Assembly (NCBI GenBank): GCA_038496445.1
Contig: JALMLS010000105.1
Coordinates: forward strand, 1-64,000
DNA from: Trichosphaerium sp. ATCC 40318
Taxonomy: Eukaryota > Protista > Tubulinea
Reading direction: 5' to 3'
DNA: 64,000 nucleotides
This document shows, one piece after another, positions 106-53,832 of this stretch. How positions within the stretch are numbered: position 1 is the stretch's first letter; every line of letters begins with the position of its first letter. Below the pieces are notes generated by a model. It worked only from the letters and a program-made list of their open reading frames with translations. It was not told where the DNA came from and made no database searches. The position numbers and the translations under genes are program-made.

Positions 106-1071
106 ATGGGTGGTAAAAGCAGCAAAGCGAGTAACAACAAACGAGAAAAAAAAGGTGAGAACTGTTAAACTTGATTTCTCCGTATATTTTGCTCTGAACT
201 CTACAAAAGACTTCCACAACCCCTTTTACAACTACTTTGCGAAGTCTTCTTTTTTACAAGCGTTTCTACCTTCTAGTGAGTAACTGATACACTCACATTA
301 GCCTTGAAAGTTGAAACGCCCATACAAGACTAGTACATTCCTCTTTGGCTTTCCGATTTTTCTTGACCACGTGTTTTTAGTGGTTATGAATACAAAATTA
401 TTACCTTTGGAGATCCTGGTGTTGGAAAAAGCAGTGCTATACGTAGATTTGTTGATGATACATATTCAGAACCATTCATCCCTACAGTCAGTGTTAACTT
501 TGTATGACACTTTGGTACTTTAAAATGCACGTGTTAACAAGATGTAGAGAGAGAAATACATACAAGTATTTGAGAAAACCATCAAGCTACAAATTTGGGA
601 TCAGTTTTGTGAGTGTTGATTGAGATTATTACATTAAATTATTTCGTTTTAATAGGTGATGAAAAATACGCAAGATATGGCAGGTACTTTCGACGTTCCA
701 ATGGTGCTTTGATAATGTATGATACTACAAACTTAGAGACGTTTCAAAATATCAAAAGGTGGGCACAAGAAGTTGAAAGATATGCACCAGATGAAATCCA
801 AGCAATACTTGTTGGAACAAAGAGTGATCTCATTGAAGAACATGCTGTTGATACTGATATTGCCCAGGTATAACAATAGTTTCATTTTTATTGGTTTGTT
901 AATTAAATTTAGGAATTTGCTGATGAACATGAGATGGAGTTTATTGAAATATCTTCCAAAGATGCAATCAATGGTATGTGTAGGTCTGTAAGCAAAATGG
1001 CTAACTTTATTTTCATAGTAAATGAAATGTTTATTTTGCTATCAGCCGCGATACTCGAGAATGATGAATAA
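106..1071 (+). CDS. Rab1-like small GTPase, N-myristoylation type, no C-terminal Cys (paralog 1; about 7 exons)
   Basis: Spliced by eye: MGGKSSKASNNKREK|ALKVETPIQDY|GYEYKIITFGDPGVGKSSAIRRFVDDTYSEPFIPTVSVNF|REKYIQVFEKTIKLQIWDQF|CDEKYARYGRYFRRSNGALIMYDTT...LVGTKSDL...|[20 protein letters not shown]|VNEMFILLSAAILENDE*; GT-AG introns. Confidence 0.85.
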
Positions 1072-1232
1072 CAACTAACTCTACCAGCAACTAATTAGTC
1101 ATTGTTGAGTAAATAAAGACATACCATGTTATCTTGCATCAGTCTGATTACTTTTTTTTCTAGTATGAAACACGTCCTTAGGTGAACAGAATTACTTAGT
1201 AAAGTGCACTTTCAGATCTTAGTTTTGATTCA

Positions 1233-1880
1233 ATGGCCAATGAAGCCGAGCCAAGAAAAGACTGCAGGACTTTCATCATTCCACCTTTTGATGCAGTAGT
1301 TTTAGTAGCACTGTGTGAATATAAGACACAGCTTGGTGTACTTGCCAGGCTGATAATCGACAAGAAAACAAAAAGTTGTTGTATTACAAGCCATATACAT
1401 TGTGTAATCCTTTTCAAAAATGTGTCACAGACGTTCTTACAGAACATGGGTTTTTTGAAAACTGTGATCTAAATGTAGGTATATCATCCTTGATTTTAGC
1501 TACGTCCTTTCTCCAACGTTCAGCTTACCTTTTCTTGTTGTACGTCTATTTGAGACATTTTATTATTGTTTCTGTGTTATGAAACGACAGGCTGATTAAT
1601 ACTTAGAACGGTTGTACTTTCGGCTTTGACTTTTGTGTATCCGGTTGTATTGGCTTTTTTTCACTCTCCCAAAAGAGGTAACACGTGATTTCTTTAACAA
1701 TTCTATTTTATTTCTTCAACAAACCACCTTTTTTGCTAGGATACATCATTGCAGTTTGACGACATTGACAATTTTGATGGTTTCTTTATCATTTTCCGGT
1801 AGGTTCCAATGCATGTGAAGTGGTGAAACGTTTTGACACAACACAAGCTCAGGATCTGTTAGATCTGTTAAACTGAGTGT
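1233..1880 (+). pseudogene. Degenerate paralog of the membrane-protein gene at 3786-4850
   Basis: Shares blocks such as CCAACGTTCAGCTTACCTTTTCTTG and TAGAACGGTTGTA..TTCGGCTTTGA with 4066-4475; a 2-nt indel relative to that copy shifts the frame. Confidence 0.4.
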
Positions 1881-2618
1881 CTTGTAAACTTTCAATTTGT
1901 AAGCTTGCTGTCATCAACTTTGCAATATTGTTTCCAAGAGCGTTCGATAAACTCAAGCTCACAAATACTATTACTTTTTACTTGGTCTTAATCCTGGATA
2001 TTAGGGCGTGTATTACTTGTTGACATACCCGTTGGGTATCCTCACAGAACACTTTGTGGCGCTAAACATGTTGATTTACTTACTAGCCGGACTTTTATAG
2101 TGACTAATCCGCTTATGAACCTTTACAGGGATATGGAAGAGTTGGTGCTATCTACAACAGCTCATTCGGTTCTATATGTTGCACTAGGTGGAGGCCGTTT
2201 TACTTTGTCTCATTGTTACTTAGCTGTGATAGATCTGAGTTACTGCATTTATTGATTACACTTTAAAAAACGAGTCTAATCACTGTCAAAGACACCACAA
2301 TAAATACTCGAGTGTCTAAGACTAGGCTCGTCTGGTCAAGAGAATCCGTCCAGCGGATAGAAATGTACTGACCTGTTTGTAACCTTAGAAGCTAATACAC
2401 GCTTGTCAGCCTCAACAGAAAAAATGCCTGAGGTTGCTTTGCTGCTTGAAATACGACTCTTTATTGTTATTTCAATACAAAGGTTTACATTAGTATGGAT
2501 ACCAGAATTAAGAGCACAGCCAAAGCGCATTGTTCTAGAATTGTATGAGAAACAAGATAAAAGTTCAAAGAGTGGCAATAACAACCGCTCATCCAGGAAT
2601 AAACTACACTTGTAATTG

Positions 2619-3592
2619 CTATTGGCTTTCTTCATCAATTTGATTAACCAACATTGCTGTTAACAGAATAAAGGCTTCTTTAACTACAACAATAAAGTCA
2701 GATGCTTGTATGTGTTGATGTAAACATACCATTGATTGCATCTTTGGAAGATATTTCAATAAACTCCATCTCATGTTCATCAGCAAACTCCTGATGTAAT
2801 TAACAAACCAACAAAAATGGAACTATTGTTAATACCTGGGCAATATCAGTATCAACAGCACGTTCTTCAATGAGATCAGATATCCTCTGGTGCATATATA
2901 TCAAGGTTAAGAACCCACGTTTTCGCGTATTCAAAAGTATGTTGGTTTGTAGTATCATACATTATCAAAGCACCATTGGAACCTCGATAATACCTGTCAC
3001 TACTTTTTTTTCGGAATTTCTCTGTATCTAAAAACAAATCTGTTGTTAACATACAATACAGCTTACAAAAAAAGCTGACGAGAAATGTCGCAAACTCGTA
3101 GTTTGACATCCTTGTCATACACTCTGATTGTTTTTACTTTCTAAACACTATAAACATGTGATACATTATTATAGAACTGGTTTCTATTGTGGCTGTGTGC
3201 AACTTTCTGTGATAGAAGAGTTATCACGTGTATTGTTACGTACAAAGTCAAAAGCCAATGTGGTCATGACAGACTCTGAGAAAGTATCATCAGAAAATCT
3301 AAGTGTTTTTCCAACACCAAATTCACCCATCATAATTATTTTGAATTCATAATCACTAAAACACGTGATCAAGAAATGTAATTAGCGAAGAGGAATGTAC
3401 TAGTCTCGTTTTGAGTTTTTTATATCCTTTGCAGCTAATACCGGCTTGTCAGTCACACAATGGATTAAAACTCGAAAAAGTAGTTTGATGGGGGTTGTAG
3501 AACTCTTTTGTAGAGGTTGAAAGCAAAACACAAATAAACAACATCACCTTTTTTTTGTGGTTTTACGCATGTGTACTGCTTTTAACACCCAT
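2619..3592 (-). pseudogene. Rab1-like GTPase pseudogene (paralog 2)
   Basis: Same exon layout as paralog 1, but exon 1 reads MGVKSSTHA*; residues are missing after the P-loop (GVGKTLRF); a 26-nt deletion removes the LVGTKS G4 segment and gives APEDI*. Confidence 0.85.
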
Positions 3593-3785
3593 TGCGTGTA
3601 GTATGGTGTAAGACTCTATTTTCAATGAAATTGAAGTGCGAGCGTTTAAACAAAAACTGTGTTATAGGTAGTGCTTAACACGTGTTAAAGCACTTGGGTT
3701 TTTTTGAAATACCACACCAAACAAAACCCAAGTCAATCAAGATCCGTATTCGTTTTTTGATTTTTTACTAGTAAGCAACAACACT

Positions 3786-4850
3786 ATGAACCTCACCGAA
3801 CGCATTGATGACCTTGTCAAAAAATCAGGCTGGATAATAATGATACAAGCCGAACGCATACCAAACCTCACCAAACTGTGTACAGTAATACAGCGATACA
3901 TTTTTTTCTTCACCAATCCCAATGAGTTTTGTTAAATCTCTTAGGCACTCTCGGCTGTTTCTCAAGTTATGTCATTTGTAGCATATTATATGGGACCACA
4001 CTCTCGCTTATTTTTTATTACGTGGTACTGATACACGTGATGTAAACTTCTGATGTGATTGTAGGTACTTCATACTTGGCTTTAGCTACTATATTTCTCG
4101 CCAACGTTCAGCTTACCTTTTCTTGGTTGTACGTCAGTTGAGTAATTATTGTCTGTCGCAAGCAAGCACGAAAAATCAGAGCAAAATATGCAAACTGTTA
4201 TTCGTTCAAAAGTCAAGATCTAGCACAACGTATAAAGTTTTGTCAGAACTGTAATATCTGTCACCTTTAAGCGAAGCTTTTACACATCAACAGCTTCAGT
4301 TATGACAGTTCTGTTACAAGTTGGACAACCTTGTAGATCTGTCAAACCTGTCAAATCTCAAACTGTGCCTGCAGATCTGTACATTCTTAGTTTTTTCGGC
4401 AACCTTGCTTGCGACGGACAAATAACCACAGTGCAAACTAATAATGCTAGAACGGTTGTATTCATTCGGCTTTGATGATCTTTTATGCTTACCTGTTGGC
4501 TTTTGCACTCCGATGCTGGATAGTATACGCCATCGCTTCGTGGCTTATCGCAGTTCTACAAATATTGAGCATTATGTGTAGCTTCAGGCTTTACAAGTGG
4601 ATCCAAGAGGAGGTACCAGGGTTGCTTTTAATTATGTTGTTTATTTGTAGTTCAACTTTTTACATTCTTTTCTTCAAGGGTAAATCAGTAGAAGAGCCTT
4701 CATCAAACCAGGAAGTGTATCAAGAAACAAAGGTACACGTCACTTTTTTAAAGCAGTAGTTCGCTAACTACTTTTTAGGTTCCTCAACCAGGAGTAGCAC
4801 AAGGTGTTTCGTTGGAGCCAACTGGATATTATATGTTGTCAAACCTGTAA
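3786..4850 (+). CDS. Hypothetical multi-pass membrane protein (intron-containing)
   Basis: Hydrophobic exons (ORF 4472-4759) bounded by GT-AG sites; last exon VPQPGVAQGVSLEPTGYYMLSNL*; exon structure uncertain. Confidence 0.4.
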
Positions 4851-5489
4851 GCTGAATTTGTCTTGCCTCATTTGTCGATCAAAATGTCAATACACGTCAA
4901 AGCCTTTCTAATTTCGATGAAAAAAAAGCAAAGTTTCGCTTTTTCTCAAGAGCCTTGGTTTTCCACTTGGGGTGTTTGCGGGTGGGTTTGGCATGAAGTT
5001 TACGTGGAGGCTTTACCACCAGTCGATCTACACGCAGTTGGCTTTGTACGGGCCATTACAAGAAGTGTTTTAGTAAATAAGTGTAGTTAACTAAACACTT
5101 AACATGCCAGTTATCCCAAAGTAGCGGTGTAGTAGAGCAATACCCAAATACCAGTTATTGGAAGCTAAACAAGTTTCCTGCCAGCTAACGTCATTCAATA
5201 AGAATAATGTGGCATGCCACTTATCAATCATATGAATCCAATAATTTTTCAATCAACCTGATTGATTACATGATTGATTACTCGCATCTTTGATTTGAAA
5301 TACACAAGAAAAGATCGCCTTACGAACAAATAGTTAACCAATCTATCAGTAGATTGATACAAATTCATGATTAAGTTGTACCTAATCAATCAGTTGCCTT
5401 AGCTCTTTTTTTTCAATCAACGTTTTTTTATTCATTTTTTAAACAACTCAACAACTATCAACACACCTCCCAACAACAATAAAATCACC

Positions 5490-6343
5490 ATGAACTCAAC
5501 TACACAAAACAACCAACTGTCATATGGTATTGATACACGTCCAAAAAAAAGAAGAAAAATAACTGGCGGCCCTTTTTACCAGATATCATGCTTAACGCTG
5601 CCACTCCTGAAAAAAGATAACATGTTTGTAACCTCTATGCAAATAACTTTAAAAAACACTGTTCTTCTAAGGAGAATAAGTTAACAACGCAAGATGTGAC
5701 TTGTTTCTTTAAACAAATTCAATCAAATTTCAATCAACAAACTAGAGCTCGAAATATTATCATTCAAAATCAAACAGCAAAACTACAACACCTACAATCT
5801 TGTTACAAAAATGCACAGAAACAAATTATGAGTAACAATGAAGTACATGCAACAGAGGCTGTAAAAAAAGAACTGAAGAAAAAACAAGAGGATATTGCAA
5901 TTATCAAGAAAAATCTCTCTCATGCAACTGCTGTCCTTGAAGCACATGAAAAACAGCACAATGAACTTATGAGAATGTATAGCAAACAGAAACGTGTTCT
6001 AGAAGAATGTATCCTCAGCTCACGTGATGATATAAGAAAAATAAAGGAACAAGGACAATTGATATTGAATGAAGAACAGATACTTGAAGACCGCTACAAA
6101 CAAGCTTTAGAACCATGTATAATACAAAGTATACATGCAAAAACAGAAGTGATACATTCAGAAAACGTGCTAGAACAGGTTAAAAGAGAGCTATTTGCGT
6201 TGGAAACACATAACCCTGAAAAAGTTCAATTTCAAGCATTCTTAAAGAAGATGGCAATGCAGCTTGAAATAGATCCTGATCTCGAGTTATCTGTCCTAGC
6301 AGCTACTATAGAAAAGTTTATCAGAAGTAAAGCTATGAAATAA
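5490..6343 (+). CDS. Hypothetical coiled-coil protein with NLS-like PKKRRK
   Basis: 215-aa heptad-rich ORF 5696-6343, preceded by ATG ORF 5490-5684 in good context; junction unresolved; AATAAA-like signal at the stop. Confidence 0.55.
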
Positions 6344-6906
6344 ACCATTATATTAAAATCGCACTCACAAGTTTGTTTTCCATGGAAACCCGTAGTCTCT
6401 TCTTTAGTGTAAAGCATGTTGTTAGCCTTTGTAACTTGCTCTTGATTTGTACACTAAAAAGAGACAAGGAAAAACCATACTAATATGTGCAACTTTTCTT
6501 TAGCATCTACTAGAGCAGGTGGCTGGACGGTAGGAGCTATTTGAAGCCATCTTCTTAAAGAGTTTCGATAATGCGAAAAATGAAACAGAGCATTTAATTT
6601 GTTTTATTTTTATCACGTGTCTCGCCAAACTATTGTAAAGAGGTATGTACCTGGCGAAGATTGTTCGTACTGATTGTTGGCATTGTAACTCTTGTTTAAA
6701 GTTAAAATTCTCTTTTTAGTTACAAGCTACAAGTTCACCTGTGCTAAATGTTCACACGGACACGCAGGTTCACCCGAAGCAGGGTCTTGATGGCGTGATC
6801 ATCATTAAGGTCACTCTAAGTCATGACTCCACTACGAATAAATACATTTTCGTGGTCTCTACTACACAGGATCTACCATACAACCTACATCTCTTTTAGA
6901 TACAAA

Positions 6907-7974
6907 ATGAATTCAAACAGCACGTTCTTTGATGAGATTCCTGTGGAAGTCATTATTTACATTCTACAGTTTGTTTCTAAGTTAACTATGCATTCGGTAG
7001 TACGTACTTCAAAATTATTAAAAATTGTCGCAATACAACACATGGGATACATAAACAGAAGAGAGATTGTCATCACATCAAAACAATCACTCAAAAAACT
7101 GTACAAAACAATGCCTCATCTAATTAAAACAAGCACGATAACCATCAAGTTCCCTATCAAACAGAAACAATTACAGTATCTTCAAGGAGTGTACTGCCTT
7201 AGACTTTGTAATAATAACATCAAGAAAATAGATTTCACGGACTTAAAAGCTGAAAGCATAGACTTTAGTTGGTATATTACTGATGATCACCTCATACAAC
7301 TTTCTGGAATCAAAAGAATAGATTTATTTAACATGCGCCAATTGACAGATACAGGTATCAAGGCGTTGGCTGGTGTACATACAATCGATGTTTCATTCAC
7401 ACGTGTTACTGATGAAGGCATTAAACCATTAGCTGGTGTTCATACTATCAATCTAGCACATACATGTGTGACTGATGAAGGCATTAAATCATTGGCTGGC
7501 GTTCACAAAATTAATCTTAGCAGTTGTAGAAAAGTAACCAATCACGGTATTAAGGCTTTGGTTGGTGTTCATACAATTAACCTTCATAACACAAGAGTGA
7601 CGAATAGTGGTGTAAAGGCTTTAGTTGGAGTTCATGATATTAATCTGAGTAGAACTTCAGTAACTAACAAAGGTATTAAGGCATTAGCTGGCGTACATAC
7701 AATTAATTTAAAGCGCTGTTGGAAAGTCACTGATGATGGTATCAAGGCACTGGCTGGGGTTTATAGAATTAACCTTTCTAATACTAATGTAACAGACACA
7801 AGCCTCAAAGAATTAGGTGGTGTTCATACAATATATCTTAACAACACAATAGTAACTGATGAAGGTATTAAAGCACTTACTGGAGTTCATACTATTAGCC
7901 TGCGTGGCTGTAAGAAAGTAACGAATGAAGGTGTTAAACAACTGGCCGGAGTTCATAGTCTTTTTTTGGATTAA
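6907..7974 (+). CDS. F-box / leucine-rich-repeat protein (intronless)
   Basis: F-box-like FDEIPVEVIIYILQFV, then more than 10 repeats of about 22 aa, LAGVHTINLSxTxVTDEGIK. Confidence 0.9.
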   Translation: MNSNSTFFDEIPVEVIIYILQFVSKLTMHSVVRTSKLLKIVAIQHMGYINRREIVITSKQSLKKLYKTMPHLIKTSTITIKFPIKQKQLQYLQGVYCLRLCNNNIKKIDFTDLKAESIDFSWYITDDHLIQLSGIKRIDLFNMRQLTDTGIKALAGVHTIDVSFTRVTDEGIKPLAGVHTINLAHTCVTDEGIKSLAGVHKINLSSCRKVTNHGIKALVGVHTINLHNTRVTNSGVKALVGVHDINLSRTSVTNKGIKALAGVHTINLKRCWKVTDDGIKALAGVYRINLSNTNVTDTSLKELGGVHTIYLNNTIVTDEGIKALTGVHTISLRGCKKVTNEGVKQLAGVHSLFLD

Positions 7975-8520
7975 AAGTGCCAAGTTGTACATCACTATGA
8001 TAGTAATCAATAAAAGCCATAGCCCACGTACCTTTTCTTGTGACAATGTCGCCGGCCATAAAGGTTCTAATCATTTTTGAGTTTACTTTGCTTAACAGTA
8101 CTGATATCACGTTCCCATGTGGAGTACTTTCTACACTTTCACTACAAGTCACACGCTAAGCATAAAAGACGTTGCTTAGAAGATACATGGTAGCATTAAG
8201 TAATGCTTGGTGTCACATCTCACTAAACAAACACAATCGATCAAGCGGAAAAAACTATCATACTGAAACTTACAGCTCCCGAAGGAGTGCACTCCCTCAG
8301 ACTTGAGACCGTTTGGATAAAGATACTCAAAAGCTTGTTTCCAACTGAGGGAATGCTGTAGGAGTGAACGCCAACATGTGGCTGTATATAAAGCCAGATA
8401 AACATACTATTGCCTTCAAGTACGGTATTAGCTTTTACTCAAAGCACCAATGGTATAAAACTTGAATACGTGACTGTTTATTGAGTTGTGTACAACCTTA
8501 TGCTTGTGTAGATTGTGCTT

Positions 8521-8841
8521 CTACACCCATTCCCACCTCGGTTGGAAGACCTGTATATCTGTGTCAATACAAATAAAACAAAATCTATGTACCATGTACA
8601 AACGCTCACAGGTCAACTTTTGTGTTAACAACAAGCACTTTCTCCGTTTATTGTACTCACTTGGAGTAATAAAACCAACTTCAACAAGACTGGATAAACC
8701 ATTGAGTTCTCTGGTAATCTGCTCATCATCTGCTATTAGGATAGGGCTGAAACTAAAAAGGGTGTCAAATAATGACATTTTTTTTTTGGATTCTTCTGTA
8801 CTTTGATTGCTGCTTGGCGAAGTCAACTGGATCGTGTTCAA
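8521..8841 (-). other. Possible gene fragment with a SHOCT-like helix pair
   Basis: ELNGLSSLVEVGFITPSEYNKRRKCLL resembles the SHOCT consensus (L..L...G.IT.EEY...K..LL); no clear full gene. Confidence 0.3.
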
Positions 8842-9340
8842 CAGGATTTATACTTAATTAACAAGTTAGTCAGTTATAACTTTTAAAATCACGTGAAGCT
8901 TATTAAGATGTATAGAAGGGAAGCGTACTTGTTTGTTGAACTGTAATTTGTCTCAATTTTATTTGGTTTATTCACACGTGGTTCATTTCGTGTTTGGTTA
9001 TCCGTAGGCATTTGTTGCATTTGTCTGTATGAGATTTCAGGTAAAATAAGGTTGTCAGGTATGAATGCCATCCGTGAGGGCTTTAGCCCCGATGTACTGC
9101 GTCTACAGTTGGCCATATGCAAATAAGGTTGAGACCACTATTTGAGGAGTTTTAGGAGATAAAATGGCTACAAGTGATAATAGTCCAAAAAAGTCGTCAT
9201 ATTCTTTTCGCTACTGCCAGTTTACAACAGCAAGTGCAACATTAAATTCTAGTTACTCAACTTAACACTTGCTTGTGACAGACTACATCTTGCTTAAACT
9301 TGTATGTCACTGTAATAAAAGGACACAAAAGTGCAAGAAG

Positions 9341-9535
9341 TGAAGAAGAACATCACTTATTTCCCTCCTGAAATCATTTCAAATATTCTACATCATGTGG
9401 ATGACAAAGATTTTTCCTGTTGCTCAATCATGTCATTTTATGGCTGATATTGTTAATGATATTGTTGGATACAGACAGGTTTACCTCGATAGATACAATT
9501 TTAATGCTACATCAAGTATAAAATCTATTGGATGA
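9341..9535 (+). pseudogene. F-box fragment of the F-box/LRR family
   Basis: KKNITYFPPEIISNILHHVDDKDF / frameshift / VAQSCHFMADIVNDIVGYRQVY; truncated, no LRRs. Confidence 0.55.
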
Positions 9536-9648
9536 GCCATTTCAATTTGAGTCCGTAGAGAGGCTACGAGAAGCAGGAGTGAACGCAAGTGGATGACTTA
9601 CAATGGTGAAGCACAGGCTTTGTATAGCCTCATTGACAATTCATATAT

Positions 9649-26123: not shown

Positions 26124-27155
26124 CTACTCAGTTGTTTCATCAATTTTCTTGATTATCATTGCTGCTAATAGAATAAAGGTTTCATTAACTACATATCAAG
26201 TTAGCCGGTTTTCTACATGCTATGTCATTACCATTGATTGCATCTTTCGAGGAAATTTCCATGTACTCCATCCCATGCTTATAAGCAAATACCTACACTA
26301 ATCAGCGTTTGACATCGCTAAATTGCAGTACCTGAGCAACATCATGATCAACAACACGTTCTTTCATGAGATCACTTTTTGTTCCAACAAGTATAGTTTG
26401 TACATTCTCTGGTGCATATCTTGCAACGTCTTGTGTCCACTTTTCGGTATTCTGAAAAGTCCCTTGGTTTGTAGTATCATACATCATCAACACGCCATGG
26501 ACACCTCGATATACATTTCCAATTGATCGGAATCTCTCTTGGTCTTAAACAAAACTTTTTTTAAAAAACCAGTCACTGGAATTCAAGGTCAAAAGAGCTC
26601 ACCACAAGTATCCCATATTTGTAACTTAACAGTTTTATCATGCACTTGTATGGTCTTCACTTTCTACATAATTTGGCATGTGTTAAAAACAAGAGGAAAA
26701 AAAGTAAAAGGTCAAAGGAACATGCTCATGTTTTTTTAAATTGTAGTTTTGATGTATTGAATTATCACGTGTATTGTGGACATAAAATCAAAGTGACGTA
26801 CAAAGTCAACACCAATTGTGGAGATGAATGAATCTGTGAATGTATCATCAACAAATCTAAGTACAGTACAACTTTTTCCAACACCAAGATCTCCAATTAG
26901 TTTTATTTTAAATAGATAATCACTAAAAAAAACTCGCGTCAGAAAATATAGGACTTGACAACAACAAAATGTACTAGTCTTGTGGATCCCTATTTGAGTC
27001 TAATGCAATGGTGTCAGTATCACTTTAAGAGTTTTTCCACTATTAAACCACAAAACAGCTCAAAAGTAGTTGTTTACGTGGAAATCAAGTTTTTAACAGT
27101 CGTCACCTTTTTTATTTCGTTTGCTATTACTCTCTTTACTGCTTTTACCACCCAT
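26124..27155 (-). CDS. Rab1-like small GTPase, N-myristoylation type (paralog 3)
   Basis: [16 protein letters not shown]|DSNRDPQDY|[40 protein letters not shown]|[20 protein letters not shown]|[17 protein letters not shown]...LVGTKSDL...EISSKDAIN|[21 protein letters not shown]. Confidence 0.9.
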
Positions 27156-27324
27156 TCTAGTTTTTTGTTTGTGTAAGTGAAAACCTAAACCGCAAAACTT
27201 CGTCTTGTAAAGTCAATTTTCGTCTTCACTTTTTGGAAGATAAAAAAAATCACGTGGAACATTGAACATGCTGTATAGTATGCACGCCACAATAGAGTAT
27301 CCAGATAGGCCATTAAACGATAAA

Positions 27325-28355
27325 ATGGACGAAAGTACAGATATATTAAATAGATTTGATCTATTAGACGTACCAACTGAGATAATCGCTCATTTGCTCG
27401 CGTTTGTTGATCGTTCTGGTCGATTTTCTGTTTCCGCAACCTGTAAACGGTTATTAGATATTATCCACTTTCACGTTGGATGCTACTCTATCAATGTTAA
27501 ATCAAGCGAGTGTTGTCGCCGGCTTTCAGGAAGTCCACTTCTCAAAAACACGAAAATATCTTTTGGCAATTTCCCAAAAGCATCAGACCATGACCTTGCC
27601 TTTCTTACTGGTATCAATGAACTGTCCCTTTTTGATAACGTTATAACAGACGAGGGATTGAAACAAATCATAGGTGTCCGTATTTTAAGAGTACAGTATT
27701 GTTCAAGAATAACAGACGCAGGGATAATACCACTTGTCAAAAACCTCAAAGAGATTTCATTGTGTAGATCCGCTGAAATCACTTCAAAAGGCCTTAAAGC
27801 ACTTTCTGGAATACCACGTGTTTATCTACCACACTTCTATCTTGAAGATGATGTAATGTTTTCTTTGGCTGGTGTACACACCATAGACTTACGTGAAACA
27901 TCATTAACAGATAAGGGTGTTTCAGCGTTAGCTGGAGTACATTCGATAAACTTGAGTTATACAAAAGTCACAGATGTAGGAATTTCAGCTTTGGCTGGTG
28001 TAGATACTATAGATTTGACTTATACGGCAGTTACAGATAAAGGAGTTATGGCATTGGTTGGTGTACATAAGATTAACTTGAGCTATACAAAAGTGACAGA
28101 CAGAGGTGTTTCAGCAGTTGCTTGTGTATACACAAAATACATCTTTCAGGCTGTAAAGGGATCACTGGGAAGTGTCTTAAAGACCTTGGAGGAGCACATA
28201 CTATTAATATATCGTATACAGATGCAACAGATGATTGGATTGTACATCTTTCTCGTGTACATGAACTAAGACTTTTTGGTTGTCAAAAACTTACAGGAGA
28301 ATGTATAAGTAACCTCAAACAAAAAGGGGTAACAATTCATTGGACAAATGATTAA
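27325..28355 (+). CDS. F-box / LRR protein with a frameshift near the C-terminus
   Basis: LLDVPTEIIAHLL F-box; LAGVHTIDL repeats; the repeat register continues in another frame (ORF 28122-28355) after about 28130. Confidence 0.8.
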
Positions 28356-28780: not shown

Positions 28781-29374
28781 TTACAATACAGAACATTTAT
28801 TTTTTTTTACTCGTTTAAGCATAAAACTCTTCCTTTTTCTTTGACGTATCTTTTCTTGAGCTTCAGCGGCTATTATCATTCTAGCCAACTGAAAAAAAGT
28901 TTGTTGTACATTAACACGTTTTTTTGCTGATGTTTCAAAGAAAGGCGAAGAAAACTGTCGGGCAAAGTCTTGTCCTTTTGTCTTAGCTACTTGTCGACTT
29001 GCTTTAAGATCACTCTTATTTCCAGCTATAACTAACGGAGGAAAACGTTTTTCTCGACATTTTTTAATCGTATCCACAAAAGCTTCCAAAGAGTCAAAAG
29101 AATGACAGTCTGTTATGGAGTACACCAGTAAAATACCATCAGCATCTTTTATATACATATCTCTTAGCGCCGAATATTCTTGTAGACCAACAGTACCAGC
29201 TGTATCCAATATATCTAACACAGTCGATTTTCCATCAACAATTACAGCTTTTCTATAACCGTCTTCTATGGTTGGATCATATCCAACAATGAACTCGTTG
29301 TATAAGAACTGTATCGTTAATGATGATTTACCAGCACCACCTGATCCCATTACTACTATTTTATAGTTCGACAT
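28781..29374 (-). CDS. Ras-family GTPase, intronless, with a switch-II insertion
   Basis: GSGGAGKS, YDPTIEDGY, DTAGTVGLQEY, NKSD, ETSAK, polybasic tail and CaaX CSVL. Confidence 0.92.
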   Translation of the reverse strand: MSNYKIVVMGSGGAGKSSLTIQFLYNEFIVGYDPTIEDGYRKAVIVDGKSTVLDILDTAGTVGLQEYSALRDMYIKDADGILLVYSITDCHSFDSLEAFVDTIKKCREKRFPPLVIAGNKSDLKASRQVAKTKGQDFARQFSSPFFETSAKKRVNVQQTFFQLARMIIAAEAQEKIRQRKRKSFMLKRVKKNKCSVL

Positions 29375-43896: not shown

Positions 43897-45157
43897 ATGC
43901 AAGGAGGCTACCCAGGACAACCAAAACGAGGAGGATACCCACCACAACAGGGCGGTTACCCGCCACAACAAGGAGGTTACCCACCACAACAGGGCGGTTA
44001 CCCACCACAGCAGGGCGGCTACCCTCCACAACAAGGAGGATACCCACCACAACAAGGAGGTTACCCACCGCAACAGGGCGGCTACCCACCGCAACAAGGA
44101 GGTTACCCACCACAACAACAACGTCCAGGAGGTTTACAAACGGCTCAGTCAACTCAGCTGACTGGTTGGGTATATTTTTAACTCAACTGCAATTTACTCG
44201 CTAATTCGCACTAGTATGCGCAATACTACCAACAAATTCCACCTCAGCAATTGCAACAGCTTCGTAGTTGGTTTGCTGGTATGGACAGAGACAGGTTCGT
44301 TAGCTTTTGTGCTGTTGAGCACTAAACGCGGTTTATAGATCTGGAAGTATCACCTCAACAGAATTAGCGAACGTGCAGGTAATAATTCTAAACATGATCG
44401 TTTTTAAACTTAATTTTGCTTTAGTTTGGCCAAAGACCACTAGGAGCACCAGCCGCAAAGAGTGCGGACAAGATCAAATCAATTTGACAAATTAACTGAT
44501 TTTCTCTAGAACTCGTAAAGGTTTTCGACAAAGATCACTCAGGTATGTAGTAATCGTCTAAACTTCAAATCTATTGTTTACATTTCCTTTTAGGAACCAT
44601 CGATTTTAAAGAATACGCTGCCTTGCATCAATTTATTACTACCATGCAAAACGCCTTCTTTCATGCTGATGGCGATAGAAGGTACGCGTAGAACCCTCAC
44701 AGAACGAAATTCATAAAACACAAAACTCTAAATAACGCTTAAGCGGTACATTGGACGCACGCGAGATTCATACTGCTTTGGTTGCTGCTAGCTTCCAATT
44801 GAGCCTACCAACAGTACAAGCGATTTGTAAAAAGTTTGGTAAAAAGCCAGCCGGAGGCCGTAGAGGTCAACGTCCTGCCCCTGCTGGACTCACTTTCCCA
44901 GACTTTATCATGTGTTGTGCTCACCTTGCTCACGTCCGTAGTATCTTCGAGGTACCGTTAACTTTTTTTTTTATTCACGTGCTTACGCTGTTATTTAGTG
45001 GAATGATACACAACGACAAGGCCGTGTCACCTTTACTTACGATCAACTCAGCCACGTCTCAAGTACGAATTTTTTTTCTTTTTAAGAAATTTGTGTTTTA
45101 TTTTTTTACTTTTTTTGTATTTGTCCTTATAAGCTTTTAGCTGAGCTCCTCGTATAA
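43897..45157 (+). CDS. Penta-EF-hand protein (peflin/ALG-2-like) with Gly/Pro/Tyr/Gln N-terminus
   Basis: [57 protein letters not shown]. Confidence 0.9.
43930..44118 (+). repeat. 9 x GGYPPQQ coding repeat (21-nt unit)
   Basis: Direct translation of ORF 43897-44181. Confidence 0.95.
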
Positions 45158-45237
45158 TAATATTCTTCTTGTTGTTATGAACAATAAATTTATTTGGTTC
45201 GTAAAAGTACTTGGTTTGGTGTTGGTTGCGTATCGGA

Positions 45238-45522
45238 TCAAAAACACCCGCGGCGGAGGAATGCATTTCTACTTCCGACGGTGTAACTGACGGGCCCTGT
45301 GGCTGCCATGTATCTACTAGAGTGATGTGAGGAGGAATTGTGTTTGGTTTTAGCGTACTTTTTCGGGGTGAAGCTTCGACTTCGGCTTCTTGTGGCTTTG
45401 GCGGTTGGGCTAGAACTTGAGGCATTTTTCTTTTTGGACATAGCGGCAGCTTCTATTATCTTAGTTTTAGAGTAGCTCCCATCGTGTGTCGACTTTCTTC
45501 TGTGCCTTCTCGTTGCTTCCAT
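45238..45522 (-). CDS. Small basic Ser/Arg/Lys-rich hypothetical protein
   Basis: ATG preceded by ACAACAAAACATC as in other genes here; 94 aa; convergent with the PEF gene. Confidence 0.5.
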   Translation of the reverse strand: MEATRRHRRKSTHDGSYSKTKIIEAAAMSKKKNASSSSPTAKATRSRSRSFTPKKYAKTKHNSSSHHSSRYMAATGPVSYTVGSRNAFLRRGCF

Positions 45523-45929
45523 GATGTTTTGTTGTTAAATATGGGCATGTAGTTATCAGTTACCGTAATTGCTGCGCAGCTTACCGCTCAGTTGTGGCGC
45601 AGTTGTGAAGCATTTTATGAGAGGCTTTTTTTTAACACATGGTTGACATGCGTCCGATTACACAGTAATAAGCGTACTTGCTACAATAAAGCATAAATTA
45701 CGCAGACATTGCAAGAAGACTGAAGTAAGTAATCTGTTGTTTTGTTACGGCAGGTAATTGAACAAAGCGCCCTTAAGTCGCATTCTCTTCCCTGAAGATT
45801 GTTCGATTCTGCCGTCAAGACTGAACGGTTAACAGCCTTAACCATTTTTCATGAAATTTCTGCGTCTAAGCGAAAGAATTTCACTTCAGCAAACAGAAAG
45901 CACCCTTTCCGTACATACGCTAAACAACA

Positions 45930-47394
45930 ATGGTAGTAATTAAAGCAAAGCTCGGCTCTGAGCTTCGGCGCTTTACTCTCCCGAACAGCTCTAATTTTGA
46001 GCATTTGCGCGGTTTCCTCATCCAGCTCTTCTCTCTCACTACTGAGTTTATAATAAAGGTACGTTAGCTGCAAACACGAAACACAAAAAACTTATTTTTT
46101 TTTAGTACAAGGATGATGAGGGCGATACAGTAATGATAGGAACAGACGATGAACTAGAGGAGGCTGTTCGCGTCTCGCAAGGATTAAAACCTGCAATTCT
46201 ACGTTTGTCGATAGAACGGACGAACCAACCCCTCGTGATGCCTACACAGCCATCGGTGGCCCAAAAACCAGAGCCCATTCAGCCGCGGCAGCAAATTTCC
46301 GAAAAGGCGCCAGCTCAGCAAAGCAGCTTCAATTCAGCTTACGATTTTATCTCCCGCGTACGTTCCCACTTCGCGGATTCACCATTAAAATACCACACTT
46401 TCTTGCGCACTCTACAAAGCTACCGCACCAAGAAGTACGTCATTTAACCATATAATCGTTTTATTAACGCGCGTAGAATGAGCTTGGATCAAGTTCACGC
46501 TCGGATTAGCGGACTCTTCTCTGACAATGCAGAGCTCCTTGAAGGTACGCTATTAAAGCAATAAAAACAAAACTAACCACCGCCTGTTTCTAGGATTTAA
46601 AACGTTCTTGCCACCAGGGTTCAAGGCTAAACCGCTACCTAACCGCAATTCAGGACCTTCAAAGAAACAAATGAGCCCAACACAGCTTCCTTCTGCTGCT
46701 CAATTGTCTTTCAGCATCCCAAAACTACATGCGACTCAATTGCCTTCGTTATCGTTAGTTATGCCTCAACAATCACCTTCACCAGTTGTCGACCCAAAAC
46801 CAGTCCAACCAGCTTGGAATCCAGCTCCTCAAGCGAACGCACAACCAAAACGTGTTGCTATCCCTCAATCACTTGGCAGGCTCGCCTCCCTTTGCGCTGA
46901 ATGCGGTGAGATTTCAAACAAATTGAACCAAGAACTAGCCAATTTGTCAATGTCTAGTGCTCTTATGAGCAAACAAATGTGCGATCAAACAACCGCACTC
47001 ACAGGTGATGTAATGCAAGAGTCAATGCTTAAATCACAAATCCGTACGTAGAGCCTGTCGCAACTTTTTTTCCATTTTTTTTTTCCTTGACTGATTGGTT
47101 TTTTTAGCGGACCAAGCCAATGAGCCTAATGAGTCTGCACTACAAAACCTTCATACCACAACATCTGACTTGACATTATCTGTACAACAAGACCTTCACA
47201 CAACACTACAAGCTCAAATGTTGGCTATCAATGAGGAGTCTAAAAAAGTCCAAGAAAGCCAACGTAATTTGGAGAACCAATGTCAAGAATTGTTCGAAAA
47301 GACCCTTCGTATGTGCTCTGACTTTTCTAAGAGTATCGCACAAACTACAGAACAAGTACACGATAAGACCGTTGGGGACATCCGCAACATGTAA
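45930..47394 (+). CDS. PB1 + PAH domain protein with C-terminal coiled coil
   Basis: MVVIKAKLGSELRRF...IK|YKDDEGDTVMIGTDDELEEA (PB1 Lys + OPCA); AYDFISRVRSHFADSPLKYHTFLRTLQSY..VHARISGLFSDNAELLEGFKTFLP (PAH). Confidence 0.85.
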
Positions 47395-47634
47395 TAACAC
47401 TGTTAAATAGAAATAAACACCCTCTGTAACCCTTCTACATATCAATCAAACAAAGTCTCAGTTCAACTCGTGTTACCTCCTTATTTTAAACCACACAGCC
47501 GTGATGTAACTAAAGCGTTATTGGTATATTGTATTTAGCAATGTGGTGCGTTTGAAGTGATTTGAGAGTTTAGATTTGCCCAAAACAAAAAACACAAAAA
47601 AGAGGATATTATATGGCCACATACTCAATACGTT

Positions 47635-47801
47635 CTTATGCCTCACAGCCGTACAGTCCCTCCCTAGAATCGAAGGATGCCGGGCGCTGCTCGCACAAGT
47701 CGGATTCACTCTTATGTGCCTCTACTATCAGTCTAACTTCTGCAAATGTCTAGGATATAGGTATAGCTATCCTGATAGTAGACGGAATCCATAAGTTTTT
47801 T
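47635..47801. ncRNA. Candidate structured non-coding element
   Basis: Nested inverted repeats GGATTC/GAATCC and TCTACTATCAG/CTGATAGTAGA, terminal CTTATG/CATAAG, T6 run at the 3' end; intergenic and GC-richer than the flanks. Confidence 0.35.
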
Positions 47802-48486
47802 ATGTGTCCCACCGTCGTATCACACTTTTATAGTGTGTTCCTTTTCATTATTGGAATAAATACTTATCGATTAAGTACAACTACTTACAACCAAAAAAAT
47901 AAATTGTGGTTACCCAATATACTCTGTACACGTGCGTAGGAGCTACAGAGCATGTTGTAATGTTTGTGAGTGAAAGACAAATATAAAAATCAATCATGTG
48001 ATCAAACTTTTTACTGTTCTCGTCGAAAGCCAGTTTAAAATACATCAGAGTGGTTATTTTCTGATTCAATACGGTATTTTAACTCTATTTCTTCAGTTGT
48101 AAATGATTGATTAATCAAACGAAATAATTTTTGGTTTGGTTTTTCTGAGTCAAAAAAAAAGTGAATCAAATTCAATTTTATTGAGCTTGTGAAGTGTTCG
48201 GAATTGTAATAATTTTTCTCCTTTTGGGTTTGTCCTCCCTCACAGCTCTGGTTACAAATCATGCAGACTGAAGTAGTCCTTCAATCTCAAGAGGAGACTG
48301 CCATTGACTAGTCGTTTTCCCGAATTCCGATTTCCGTTTTTGCTTTCTCAGAAAATGCATTTTAACAATTTGGTGGCGTATTCGATAATCCCACGGTTAT
48401 AAAAAATGTATGGAAGATGTTAGATTATTTTTTGGTTAAGGCTTGGCGCCGAAATTTGATTAGCATTTTTCCATCAACAAACTCAA

Positions 48487-51400
48487 ATGTCCGCAACTGT
48501 TACCTTATTAAAAAGCGGTCCAGACGGAGGACCAAACATGGTGGAGCTTTTTAGAGAAATGAAGTTAGAAAAGGTACAGCATAATGAAACTTTGAAAAAA
48601 AGAGCCGCTTTTTGGCTAATGCAGAGCAGGATCCAAGACTTTCAGGCTACAAACGCACCTTCAATCCAAAATTAGTTGGTACAACCATAAAATTTCCTTT
48701 TAAAACCAACTAACGGTTCCTACTATAGCTGCAGTCAATAAGAACGATACTGATAATGTGTACTTTGTCGTAAAGGTTAGTAAAGACCCTAATACAATTT
48801 TACGCTAAAAAATACCTAGCAAACAAAACCACGCGTGTCATTAGACCTGTTGATGGTAAATAGTCTTGGTTTCAAGTTCACAAAATTCAAGCTGTCATAT
48901 AGCAAAGCAGAAAAGTACGAGAAGATATATACGTTGTTCAAGGTGCGATTTATATGCTTGTTTCGTACAATTGCAGAAATATTTCTTGATGAAATGAACC
49001 ACATAAAAAAAAACTTTTTGATTAATTTTTATTACTCAGAATGAACCATTTTTCTTGTTTGATGGAATAGATAAACTATCGTTTAATAAACTCGGAAAAA
49101 AGCGACCTTGTTGCTCGTTTTGCATACAGATGGCTGGCCCTTTGCTTCTAGCACGGAGTCTACGCCAAAGTCCTACTGGACGTGCTAATAGGCGGTATAC
49201 AGTCGCTGCAGCAAGTACGTATTTTTATCAAGTTTACGAGGTTATTAAACGAAGCGCTAGATGACGAACACATTGAAGAAGCAAAAAGATTTTCATTCAC
49301 ATTTTATTCCAATGACACTGTACGTCCTATTGACAAACGCACGTGTTTTATTCAAATCATTTACTAGGGACAAGCGTTTAAATCACTAATGGAGCTACGA
49401 AATAGAACTCTAGGAGATGAAGATAGCTATTTTGAAGTTCATTCAGTGTCATCATCTGAAAGGAAAAAAAAGAAAAAAAGTAAAAGAAAATCAAAAAGAA
49501 GGAGACGCAGTAACAAAGCAAAGATATCAAAGTCTACTATTCTTGGTCTATCTGGAAGCGAATGTTTTGATACATTCACAAATGATAATTACTTTGATAC
49601 TGCAATGTCGGAGTAGCACGTGTAAAACAAAACAACAAATGTAACGTATAAATTTATATTGAAAATATCCTATTGTTGTTTAAGTACTGCTTATACTAAA
49701 AACGCTTGGATTACGATGCCAAGAAGCCAAAATCTTCAGTACAATTGTATTAGATCCAGAACCATCATTCAGCAATGTACTGATTCGTTGAATATAGCAA
49801 AGTGTTAAGGTTTGCAATGACTCAACTTTTGTTGCAAACGATACCATTGGCGGCAAAAAAGCGACATTTGTGCTAGCAAATTGTTGGATTTGATAGCGGC
49901 CAAGGTGCGTAGTACCATAAGTAAGTGATATCAGTACGTTCTGGTGTTCGTTGGCAGTAGCGAAAAAAAAACAGAAATCAAGTGTTTGTTGTAGGAAATC
50001 ACGTGAAGGTGATATTGTCCTTCGCAATACAAAATCAAAAGCTCCATCACCGTACACCAGTATTAATGAATACGCCAATTGGGACAGTGTATAGAATATT
50101 GCCGGAAGGGCATTAGTTGCTACGTATTTGCTCATTTTGTGCAATTGTTTAAATTGTGTTTCAGTAAGTGGTGCGCCTTGGTAATTGTAAGCCCTGAGGA
50201 CGACGTGATTGTCTATTCTAAGGCAATCAAACTTAAGTGGTTCTAGCCTAATCTGGTCATTTTATGGAACAACGAGTTGAGCAATGAACTTTTCGTTATG
50301 AGCGAAAAGAGCTCTCGCGAGCCTGATGAGAAGGTACTACAAAAAAGAAAACAAACTGTTTATGTATTTGTTTACTTACTTTAAAACTACTATAGCTATT
50401 AGCGAGTTATCCATTCTCTCGCGTTAATAACGATAACGTTAAAGTTGGCGTTCTAACAAAAAAAGGAGCTGTACGGAGGTAAGACTACATTAAGACACTC
50501 AAATAATAATCTAAAAACTGCAACCTGCCTTTTAAAACAAATTTATACGCTTCGTTCAAATTGAGCGCATAAAAGCGCTCCAATTAACGTTTATCGCCAC
50601 TACCCTAATAAACCGCGTTAGAAACTGGAAACAAAGGTTATTCGTGCTACACTATGAATATCTATTGTACTACAAGCCAATTGGAACATCAAATCGAACG
50701 GTTCGCTAGTTTTACGGCTAAAAATTGCGTTTTACTCAAATCAAGCTTGACGTTAAATTTAAATTCGTCTTCTTATCGTCTTGTACTGTAGCAAAGCGAT
50801 AAAGCTGATTTACCACTTGGAATGATACCTCTTCGAGAAGTACAAAATATTGGCATTTCTAAGCCAACCAATAAGGACACTGACTCTCATATATCCCTTA
50901 CACTACGATACGGTACGCTATTTAATACCACATTTTGTGAAAAATGGAAATACAAAAAAAAAAAAAGTGGCAATTGCAAAAAATTGATGATTTTGAAAAG
51001 ACTGTCTCCTTTCTTTGACCATTTATGATCCTCATCAAATTTTTTATTTAGGAAGGGTATTCTTAATGCAATCTAAAGACAATGAAGAGTTAGTATCATG
51101 GTTGAGCGCCCTAAAGACGCAGTCTACTCATGTCCAAGCTGCTTTAAAGTTCTTCGATTCTCAAGAGGAGTTTTCACAGCCACAACAAACACTTGATACA
51201 TTAATCTCATTGTATCCCATGTCGACAGCCTTACTCGTTACTGATAAGTACCCAGATGATCCACTAACGTGGTTGAAACATATAATATCAATGACACGTG
51301 GTACGACTAGTCAAGACCGCTCGAACAACAATTTTTTTCCCAATCTAATCTTTGTTTTATAGATTGGCTTCACCATAAGACTTTTTTGAAACACGTCAAG

Positions 51401-52553
51401 TATATATCGGCGTATTATACCTTAGATCCTTTACAAAGGTCTTGGATAAACTGGTTCTTAAAACCTTTCAATTCTCGTATGACAAACGCCAGGGTACGCA
51501 TGAGAACAACCATCACCTTTTTTTCTCTTTTTTTTTCTTCTTGTTCATTTTGGGTGATTGATTGTTTTCTTCTAGTCCTGTATTGCACAGTTGTATAACT
51601 GTCACTTGGCACATTTCCCTGTAATAGCAGAATCTCTTAGACGTCCTCCTAAAGGAGGACATATCCATGTAGATATAGGTATGCTTGAACAATGCAGCGC
51701 TGATGATATTAAGAAAAATTATAAAACGTGTCAAAAAATGGTGGCACTGTCATGGACATACACTACTGCCTTGACTCTACTTCAAGATATTTATGAGACA
51801 AGATTAGTATCAGTAGATACTACACCACTTATGTGGCATAACGATGTATCAGCATTACAACAAATCGCAACAAAGAAAAATGTTGTTTTGCCTCAAGATA
51901 TTACAATGTTTGATAATGAAATTATTGACGTTTTCGAACAAGAACAGCTTGTACACAAACCGAAAAAACAAAAGTCAACATTAAAGGTACGCTCACATAT
52001 AGTATATAGTTTAAATCGGCCATTGATTGATAAATATTTGTTGTAGAAGATAAGATCGTTGTCTATAATCAAGAAAAAGATAAAAAAAGGCAGCGCTCCG
52101 GTCAGCCCTAGTCGTCGTAAACAGGAGAAGACGGAATGCGTCATTCGCCTTCCTGATCCTAGTAGCAGGTTTCCTGAACTTGCTAGACTTGTTAGCCCTG
52201 GTTCAGAGTCCTCGTTTGGGAGTAGTCCAAACTCTCCCAGCTCTTTTGGATCACCAGGTCTACAGCGTACATCGAGAAGGGAGTCAAATGCCAGTACTGC
52301 CAGTCCTAGGGATCATATGCTAGCCATGACGCTTGATGAATTCGATACAATGGTATCACGTGATCTAGAGGCACTTTTGAGCGGTACCAGTACACCAAGA
52401 CCGTTCCAGCGTAGAACAATAGGAGAGGTGGGAAGAAGCGAGTCTGAGTTTATGCTGAGGACTGTAAATGCCACACTTGGCCATTTGTTTGAAGATACTG
52501 AATCTCCTTCTTCAACTAAAACGATTAAATCAGCTACATCGGTTGAAACTTAG
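48487..52553 (+). CDS. PH-domain protein with Ser/Pro-rich tail (multi-exon)
   Basis: VKVGVLTKKGAVR|RNWKQRLFVLHYEYLLYYK..PLGMIPLREVQ..GRVFLMQSKDNEELVSWLSALK; basic PH signature; 5' exon structure uncertain. Confidence 0.75.
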
Positions 52554-52757
52554 TAATAAGCTTTGATCTGAGTGTTTGAGGCGAAAGGAGCAAACAAACC
52601 TGTATTTTTAATATTAAAAGTTACCAACAAAAAAAACTGCATTGTTCACTTAGTTGTTTTACAAACATTGTTACAAGACATGTCCATGTTGTTGCTAGTA
52701 ATCAAAAATTTTTACTAAGGCTCTTTTATTGTAAATTCAAGAAACGGGTCAGTGTTG

Positions 52758-53832
52758 TTATTCATCAATTTTCTTGATTATCATGGCTGCTAATAGAATA
52801 AAGGTTTCATTAACTACAAATCAAGTTAGCCGGTTTTCTACATGCTATGTCATTACCATTGATTGCATCTTTTGATGAAATTTCAATGAACTCCATCCCA
52901 AACTTATTAGCAAATGCCTAAAGTCATTAACACTACAAAACAAACTAGGGTCGTTAAATTGCATACCTGTGCAATATCAGTATCAACAGCACGTTCTTCA
53001 ATGAGATCACTCTTTGTTCCAACAAGTATTTTGTGTACATTCTCTAGTGCATATCTTTCAATCTCTTGAAGCCATTTTACTATATTAAGAAATGTCTCTT
53101 GGTCTGTAGTGTCATACATCACCAAAAAACCATGGCAAACCCTATAGGTGCGGTAACTACCACCAGTGTATCGGAATCTCTGTTGAGCTTGAAACAAAAC
53201 TTAAAAAAAAAAGCTTCAACACAGGCGCACCACAAGTATCCCATATTTGTAACTTAACAGTTTTATCATACGCTTGTATGGTCTTCACTTTCTACATAAT
53301 TGGATATATTAAAAACGCGAATCCTTATTTGTTATAAGGTCAAAGAAAAAGCAAAAGTAAAAGGTCAAAGGAGCATGCTCATGTTTTTTAAATTGTAGTT
53401 TTGATGTATTGAATTATCACGTGTATTGTGGACATAAAATCAAAGTGACGTACAAAGTCAATACCAATTGTGGAGCTGAATGAATCTGTGAATGTATCAT
53501 CAACAAATCTAAGTATAGTACAACTTTTTCCAACACCAGAATCTCCAATTAGTTTTATTTTAAGTAGATAATCACTAAAAACTCATATCAGGAACTGGAA
53601 TAAGCCCATAGAAATGTACTAGTCTGGTGGAGGGCTATATGTAGCCTCTGAGCCTAATACAATGGTGTCAGCGTCACTTTACAAGTACAAACCATAAAAC
53701 AGCTTAACAGTAGTTGCAAAGGTTGTGGAGCTCTTTTGTAGAGTTTAGGGCAAAAATATTACAGGAAATCAATTTTTAACAGTCGCCACCTTTTGGTTTG
53801 CTGTTACTCCTTTTACTGCTTTTACCACCCAT
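52758..53832 (-). CDS. Rab1-like small GTPase, N-myristoylation type (paralog 4)
   Basis: [14 protein letters not shown]|[12 protein letters not shown]|[40 protein letters not shown]|...LQIWDTC|[20 protein letters not shown]...LVGTKSDL...EISSK...[18 protein letters not shown]. Confidence 0.9.

Follow-up and report, generated by a model that had tools for sequence, protein, structure and literature searches.

A Rab1-derived GTPase family with a predicted N-terminal myristate anchor and a candidate four-base microexon in Trichosphaerium sp. ATCC 40318

RESULTS

Four Rab-type loci in a 64-kb window

In a 64-kb contig stretch of Trichosphaerium sp. ATCC 40318 (JALMLS010000105.1, positions 1 to 64,000; hereafter the window), AT-rich eukaryotic DNA with short GT..AG introns, we studied four paralogous small GTPase loci, g1 to g4, which an original prediction from the sequence had described as a Rab1-derived family that swapped C-terminal prenylation for N-terminal myristoylation. 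The window was scanned for motifs in six frames, and exon models were then assembled by hand and by script, with GT..AG introns required. All Rab-type P-loop exons (n = 4) and all mini open reading frames (ORFs) coding for MG(G/V)KSS (n = 4) found by the six-frame scan lie at these loci; the scan also picked up a single Ras-like gene that is unrelated. The predicted coordinates were borne out, as was the picture of a multi-copy family with three intact genes (g1, g3 and g4) and one dead copy (g2).

The intact gene g1 (106-1071, + strand) has exons at 106-154, 329-332 (a microexon), 381-501, 548-608, 656-867, 913-973 and 1019-1071, separated by introns of 45-174 nt that are GT..AG throughout; its product of 186 amino acids (aa), from a coding sequence (CDS) of 561 nt, has the N-terminus MGGKSSKASNNKREKK and the C-terminus ..ENDE. 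On the minus strand, g3 (26124-27155) is likewise intact, with exons at 27155-27107, 26978-26975 (microexon), 26922-26802, 26663-26603, 26543-26332, 26292-26232 and 26188-26124 and a product of 190 aa (CDS 573 nt) ending in ..ETTE. The third intact gene, g4 (52758-53832, - strand), is expressed; its exons at 53832-53790, 53623-53620 (microexon), 53574-53454, 53291-53231, 53187-52967, 52917-52857 and 52813-52758 give a product of 188 aa (CDS 567 nt) ending in ..KIDE. Each of the three thus has seven exons and a complete in-frame CDS, with introns of 39-174 nt, every one GT..AG. Exon 1 (43-49 nt) codes for MGGKSSK and a Lys/Arg-rich stretch, and the later exons code for a Rab1-like G domain that terminates a few residues past helix 5.

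The remaining locus, g2 (2619-3592, - strand), has an exon 1 that is interrupted by an in-frame TAA at codon 10 and is shorter by a net 4 nt. The P-loop exon has lost 9 nt, and a further deletion, of 26 nt, takes out TKSD, the G4 motif; with a premature stop and these deletions, g2 is the pseudogene it had been called. Its exon 6 in the seven-exon count (2730-2790, -) is identical to that of g1 (913-973, +) at 60 of 61 positions, and the end of exon 5 is near-identical, while the 5' half of g2 is much more diverged from g1 than its 3' part. This patchwork similarity to g1 suggests gene conversion or a mosaic origin.

A conserved candidate four-base exon that would restore the reading frame

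Exon 1 is 49, 49 and 43 nt long in g1, g3 and g4, respectively (a difference of 6 nt between g3 and g4), and ends in phase 1 in every case, and a single base precedes the first codon of the next large exon, the GTPase exon (exon 2 when, as from here on, the microexon is left out of the numbering). A direct splice from exon 1 to exon 2 is out of frame in every copy: the translation runs ...KK-V-I-I-Y-L-K and meets a stop after 6 more codons, so a 4-nt microexon is needed. The candidate, ACTA, is found at 329-332 in g1 (+), 3404-3401 in g2 (-), 26978-26975 in g3 (-) and 53623-53620 in g4 (-). It lies inside a 13-mer, AG-ACTA-GTACATT, in which an acceptor and a donor enclose the four bases and which does not vary among the four genes (327-339 in g1, and 3394-3406 in g2, where it is retained despite the pseudogene state). 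A search of the window for AGACTAGTACATT gives exactly four matches, one in each gene, where 0.15 would be expected at up to one mismatch. The four-gene alignment holds only one longer perfectly conserved block (19 nt), and the microexon 13-mer equals in length the 13-nt block of the P-loop; among intron columns, only 25% are identical in all four copies.

The donor of the microexon, GTACAT, resembles RNA-verified donors of the same genome such as GTACGT and GTACGA, and the intron downstream of it is 45-52 nt long, the usual size for this genome. Inclusion of ACTA restores the frame in g1, g3 and g4, giving Asp-Tyr across the junctions (G/AC TA/T, with slashes at the splice sites) and rebuilding the Rab1 N-terminal start DYDYLFK. 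Other solutions were tried and rejected. An alternative acceptor at an upstream AG is in frame in g3, but g1 and g4 carry a TGA four to five codons before exon 2, and two other candidate small exons that fit the frame, one of 16 nt in g3 and one of 25 nt in g4, are unconserved between copies. As judged from these gene models, the putative ACTA exon is the sole solution that works in all copies. Intron 1 of all four genes also has an AACTACT block in common, about 100 nt upstream of the microexon (alignment column 127).

RNA contigs on g4

RNA contigs from four runs, belonging to two studies, were placed on g4. All four runs behave as RNA, with the neighbouring gene at 54459-56000 showing six GT..AG skips. 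The contigs confirm four of the six g4 introns, with joints at 53291>53454, 53187>53231, 52916>52966 and 52813>52857 that match the model, and they verify the exon 3/exon 4 junction that creates the altered switch II sequence DTCAQQ. One contig (52813-52721) passes through the g4 stop (52758-52760) into the 3' untranslated region (UTR) without a break, so there is no hidden 3' exon coding for cysteines; the stop position and the absence of a further Cys-bearing exon, which the original prediction had singled out for an RNA check, are therefore settled for g4. A search of RNA runs with g3 alone found no run. Loose contig ends at 53496-53561 (-) belong to transcripts of at least three other Rab1-like paralogs, outside the window, which cross-map on g4 exon 2 and translate as ..STPKESDYYFK.., ..YDYLFKIVV.. 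and ..EFKIIM...

At the 5' end, a 436-nt contig covers 53819-53941, consisting of 109 nt of leader and the first 14 nt of the g4 CDS, and extends upstream to 54388. The 5' leader of g4 (53833-54388, -) has an ATG-bearing exon that starts at 53941 and more upstream leader exons to about 54388 (the contig covers 54193-54388). Because the 49-nt leader gap at 53990-53942 is GT..AG on the minus strand, the leader belongs to the g4 strand. A 22-nt block is identical upstream of g1 (40-61, +) and g4 (53862-53883, -) and contains an ATG opening a short upstream ORF (MFWF...), which in the g4 copy ends two bases before the main ATG; the block may represent a conserved regulatory upstream ORF.

A Rab1-type G domain with an altered switch II

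Exons 2 and 4 of g3 match Pfam Ras (PF00071). Their best solved-structure matches are Rab1A/Rab1B (64-70 bits) and Ypt1 (54-63 bits), with the next Rab family at 49-52 bits, so that Rab1A/B lead the next subfamily by about 15-19 bits; for neither exon does Rab5 figure in the 60 best solved-structure matches shown. These matches uphold the Rab1-type core of the original prediction. Canonical Rab1/Ypt1 is also the best match of every long exon in the window, and the YDYLFK start is common to both. RabF1 (IGVDF) and RabF2 (KLQIW), which canonical Rab1 proteins also have, are intact in g3 and g4, and RabF3-F5 are degenerate (RFRSIG, VYRGV and MMYDTT against RFRSIT, YYRGA and LVYDIT); g1 is more diverged.

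G1 (GxxxxGKS), the switch I Thr, G4 (TKSD) and G5 (SSK) are kept in g1, g3 and g4, making nucleotide binding by all three plausible on the basis of motifs. Rho-family GTPases normally have Thr instead of Asn in G4. The switch II region reads WDQFCDEKY in g1, WDTCDQERF in g3 and WDTCAQQRF in g4, so that the G3 motif DxxGQ is found in none of them: its Gly is lost in every intact copy (replaced by D in g3 and A in g4, and rearranged to DQFCDE in g1), and g1 is also without the catalytic Gln. Ras G60 mutants show that this glycine is required for switch II closure on the gamma-phosphate. Given its replacement in all intact copies, switch II closure and GTP hydrolysis are probably impaired, and the loss of this glycine argues against a normal Rab cycle.

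Predicted N-terminal anchor and missing C-terminal cysteines

The MG(G/V)KSS first exon is present in all four copies and is basic in the intact ones. The MGGKSSK start of g1, g3 and g4 fits the N-myristoyltransferase motif, M-G-{EDRKHPFYW}-x-x-[STAGCN]-{P}, and the basic patch of g3 has six Lys/Arg against one Glu within 16 residues, with no Cys nearby; the consensus fit and the Lys/Arg-rich stretch behind it are as originally described. At the other end, we found no C-terminal CC, CxC or CaaX motif and no Cys in the last 5 residues of g1, g3 and g4, whose stops just after helix 5 likewise agree with the earlier description and, for g4, with the RNA. Two kb from one of the Rab paralogs lies a Ras/Rap-like gene (28781-29374, -), intronless and coding for 197 aa with a normal DTAG (Pfam Ras, 162 bits), which has a polybasic CaaX end, ..KRVKKNKCSVL. 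CaaX ends therefore exist in this genome, where prenylation is presumably in use, and their absence is specific to the Rab paralogs.

In the proposed mechanism, the initiator Met would be removed and N-myristoyltransferase would acylate Gly2, after which the myristate and the adjacent basic patch would together keep the protein at acidic membranes in the manner of Src or BASP1. Lacking a C-terminal Cys, the protein would not be geranylgeranylated and would not be a client of Rab escort protein (REP), Rab geranylgeranyl transferase (RabGGTase) or GDP dissociation inhibitor (GDI). Src, BASP1/NAP-22 and MARCKS are alike in having MGxKxSK and clustered Lys/Arg, two weak signals that jointly bind acidic membranes; they differ in not being GTPases, so the likeness to the window proteins is in the anchor alone. 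Sequence analysis gives good support, and RNA partial support, to the reading of these proteins as Rab1 derivatives with N-myristoylation and without prenylation, while the lipidation itself, the independence from GDI and any trafficking or signalling function of the family are only predicted.

Related Rab1 paralogs in other protists

In a cluster-representative library queried with exon 4, no relative exceeded 56% identity, and the same listing contained P0081, a Rab1-like protein that starts with MGNCFG and ends without Cys. A search with P0081, followed by inspection of the sequences, led to two groups of Rab1-like proteins that are predicted to be N-acylated and lack the C-terminal Cys. 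Group A consists of P0081, P0389, P0392, P0521 and P0390 from Arcella intermedia, and group B includes P0396-P0402, P0508, P0520 and others, as well as genes in two genomic sequences, L001 and L002. Group B proteins start with MGC or MGNC, continue with a linker of 30-40 residues, keep DTAGQERF and end in ..KEKLEE; they are of Rab1 type (291 bits to Rab1A against 222 to Rab35). Among them BLAST also finds the top matches for g3 and g4, whose scores are slightly higher against group B (54-56% identity) than against canonical Rab1 (49-54%). Two further searches were aimed at transcript-derived members of the family: with exon 2 as the query, every match was a genomic Rab1 exon from another species (77% identity at best), and the matches of a window-exon profile on a Ypt1 scaffold were dominated by fungal Ypt1.

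Gene layouts in other genomes also support the microexon model. In ordinary Rab1 genes of other eukaryotes, retrieved with an exon 2-region query, the corresponding exon starts at ../T GAT TAT (VFS/DYLFK) and ends at GVDF/VS. As these borders match those of the window genes, the introns inside the Tyr codon (TA/T) before DYLFK and after GVDF are old Rab1 introns, and the window microexon ends in the same TA. L001 (a European Nucleotide Archive, ENA, metagenome assembly) and L002 both have an MG exon of 31-40 nt with a phase-1 end, followed by a linker exon (74-77 nt, ending in GA(A/G) TA) and the DYLFK exon. The window microexon occupies the same place as this linker exon, with the same entry and exit phases, and so reads as a linker exon shrunk to four bases; as such it would be a concrete case of extreme exon shrinkage. 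L002 (GCA_023897955.2, JAKZLS010000614.1, 52438-59822) is a GC-rich scaffold in the Schistocerca gregaria assembly that looks like a contaminant protist; its group B gene is annotated as the locust gene LOC126326081.

Both groups are like the window family in having a Rab1-type core, an N-terminal Met-Gly extension and no C-terminal Cys, and group B alone also has the three-exon N-terminal layout and the C-terminal end of the window genes. The MGC/MGNC paralogs differ in their 30-40 residue linker, in carrying a palmitoylation site (Cys3 or Cys4) and in an intact DTAGQERF; the window genes have the linker exon down to 4 nt, a basic patch for the Cys, and a degenerate switch II. Since Arcella intermedia and unidentified protists have such Cys-less proteins too, the original claim of an independent swap special to the window family is not supported as stated, and the case for a unique invention is weakened. 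The window family is probably an offshoot of a wider class of N-acylated Cys-less Rab1 paralogs in other protists, or at the minimum runs parallel to it.

Comparison with known lipidated GTPases

The plant ARA6/RabF1 and the Rab5B of Plasmodium and Toxoplasma are N-acylated GTPases of the Rab5 group (PMC3912013, PMC3871812). Like the window proteins, they are without a C-terminal prenylation Cys, have a Met-Gly myristoylation context and are attached to membranes by the N-terminus. They differ in belonging to the Rab5 group, in carrying two acyl groups (myristate, and palmitate attached to a neighbouring Cys) and in their normal DTAGQE, whereas the window proteins are Rab1-type, have a basic patch in place of the N-terminal Cys and have lost the G3 Gly. 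Against canonical Rab1, with which the window genes have the intron positions before DYLFK and after GVDF in common, the window proteins lack the hypervariable tail and CC/CxC, add a myristoylation exon, sit on a long branch, are about 50% identical and have DTCDQ, DTCAQ or DQFCDE for DTAGQ. In Rheb variants of protists, prenylation was repeatedly replaced or supplemented by N-terminal myristoylation or palmitoylation, with one myristoylation shown experimentally (PMC5869587); these are Ras-superfamily GTPases with N-terminal acylation, as the window proteins are predicted to be, but of a different GTPase family. The only Rab example named in that paper is a Rab5-related paralog (PMC5869587). 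We found no paper on N-acylated Rab1 paralogs in the literature searched, and a prior description is possible.

Weighing the interpretation

Taking these results together, we consider it likely that a small GTPase family derived from Rab1, expanded in this lineage and N-anchored through a microexon-joined exon, is present in the window as three working genes and one dead copy. Several observations weigh against this interpretation. No RNA contig from the four runs crosses the exon 1-microexon-exon 2 junction of g4, and bases 53790-53818 of its exon 1 lie outside contig coverage, so the join of exon 1 to the microexon is inferred, not seen; the g4 contigs end where the paralogs share sequence. 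The acceptor of the microexon (ACAAG or CACCAG) is without the T-rich tract of most RNA-verified acceptors. Ahead of the MGGKSS start, the g4 leader contains about nine ATGs that open short ORFs, and these could limit how much is translated from that start. In the best tree, the window clade joins neither group A nor group B, and the order among the three is not settled. Finally, the ratios of nonsynonymous to synonymous substitution rates (dN/dS) between the intact copies (0.54-0.66, and up to 0.99), the lost G3 Gly and one clear pseudogene are compatible with decay.

The position in the tree bears on the competing explanation that survives best, in which the swap from prenylation to myristoylation occurred independently in this lineage and the likeness to the MGC-type Rab1 paralogs is convergent. 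In the maximum-likelihood tree, which took in Rab1-like sequences only, group A, group B and the window genes each form a well-supported clade, and convergence would fit a window clade with support of 100/99 on a long branch outside both groups. It would also fit the N-terminal signal (Gly3 and a basic patch rather than Cys3) and the approximately unbiased (AU) test, by which joining the window genes with group A (Arcella) was marginally rejected (p-AU 0.039). The same test did not reject joining them with group B (p-AU 0.15), which supplies the best BLAST matches of g3 and g4. The extra N-terminal intron is in the same phase in these relatives and the linker exon ends alike, and the proteins end at the same aligned residue, the last of g4 aligning by BLAST to the last of P0397, P0398 and P0400 (KKIDE-stop against KEKLEE-stop). 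On this evidence we lean towards common descent of the window genes with group B, and see convergence as a possible but less probable history.

The gap in RNA coverage leaves room for a second alternative, in which transcripts include the MGGKSS exon without a productive splice to the G domain. Either the microexon is skipped or the 13-mer is another intronic element on this view, and the GTPase would then begin elsewhere or the mRNA would be a non-productive isoform with a premature stop. The uncrossed junction, the weak acceptor, the ATG-rich leader and the stop that follows a direct join are all on its side. Against it, the three exon 1 lengths all end in phase 1 and differ by 6 nt between g3 and g4, the 13-mer takes in an acceptor, four bases, a donor and nothing else and is conserved as much as the P-loop, and no other in-frame start or acceptor serves all copies given the TGA before exon 2 in g1 and g4. 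In addition, the same three-exon layout is found in relatives with transcript or RefSeq protein models. We therefore think this alternative unlikely. The original prediction had exon 1 spliced to the GTPase exons and overlooked the microexon; a direct join falls, while the join via ACTA stands in the model.

The coding sequences were also compared for signs of constraint. Identity between g3 and g4 is 87% in exons and 79% in introns, and that of g1 to g3/g4 is 76% in exons and 56-60% in introns; insertions and deletions between the intact CDSs are all multiples of three, against 119-166 gap columns in introns. The dN/dS values are 0.54-0.66 by the Nei-Gojobori method (NG86) and 0.66-0.99 by that of Li, Wu and Luo (LWL85), a far looser regime than we would look for in housekeeping Rabs. 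Such values suggest weak purifying selection or constraint mixed with diversification, and the family appears from these comparisons to be evolving fast under weak constraint. A reading of the copies as functionless leftovers of a duplicated Rab1 paralog, still transcribed but on their way to becoming pseudogenes, would suit these ratios, the missing G3 Gly and g1 Gln and the already dead g2, but it is improbable in view of three copies with seven open exons, intact splice sites and exons clearly better conserved than introns, the correct splicing of g4 in four RNA runs from two studies, and the conservation of G1, G2, G4, G5 and the MGGKSSK start.

Neighbouring genes

A long ORF with leucine-rich repeats (Pfam LRR_6) at 27262-28269 (+) lies head to head with g3. 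The gene at 54459-56000 (+) has at least seven exons and a contig word depth far above that of g4. Its first exon is about 70 nt from the far end of the g4 leader, and the two look like a divergent pair with a common promoter region.

DISCUSSION

Textbook Rabs are geranylgeranylated at the C-terminus and recycled by GDI, and the accepted exceptions to Rab prenylation are proteins of the Rab5 group, ARA6 and Rab5B. The family described here would mean that a Rab1-derived lineage made the same anchor switch as these Rab5-group proteins. One further suggestion about its role, which is speculative and quite unlikely in our estimation, is that its members are membrane-pinned Rab1 look-alikes with a disabled switch II, serving as decoys or sensors for Rab1-targeting factors such as effectors of intracellular bacteria or giant-virus proteins. 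If this were true, they would be held on the plasma or phagosomal membrane by myristate and charge, in an arms race of gene birth and death, and the copy number, the fast protein evolution and the concentration of changes in switch II would be explained. Switch II is the region of Rab1 modified by such effectors.

With Cys-less, N-acylated (predicted) Rab1 paralogs in this genome, in Arcella and in several other protists, the prenyl anchor appears to have been replaced more often, or earlier, than the searched literature records. To this switch the window family would add two steps, the replacement of palmitate by a basic patch as the second membrane signal and the loss of the G3 Gly. It may thereby offer a natural test case for a Rab fold that would work without the GDI cycle or a normal switch.

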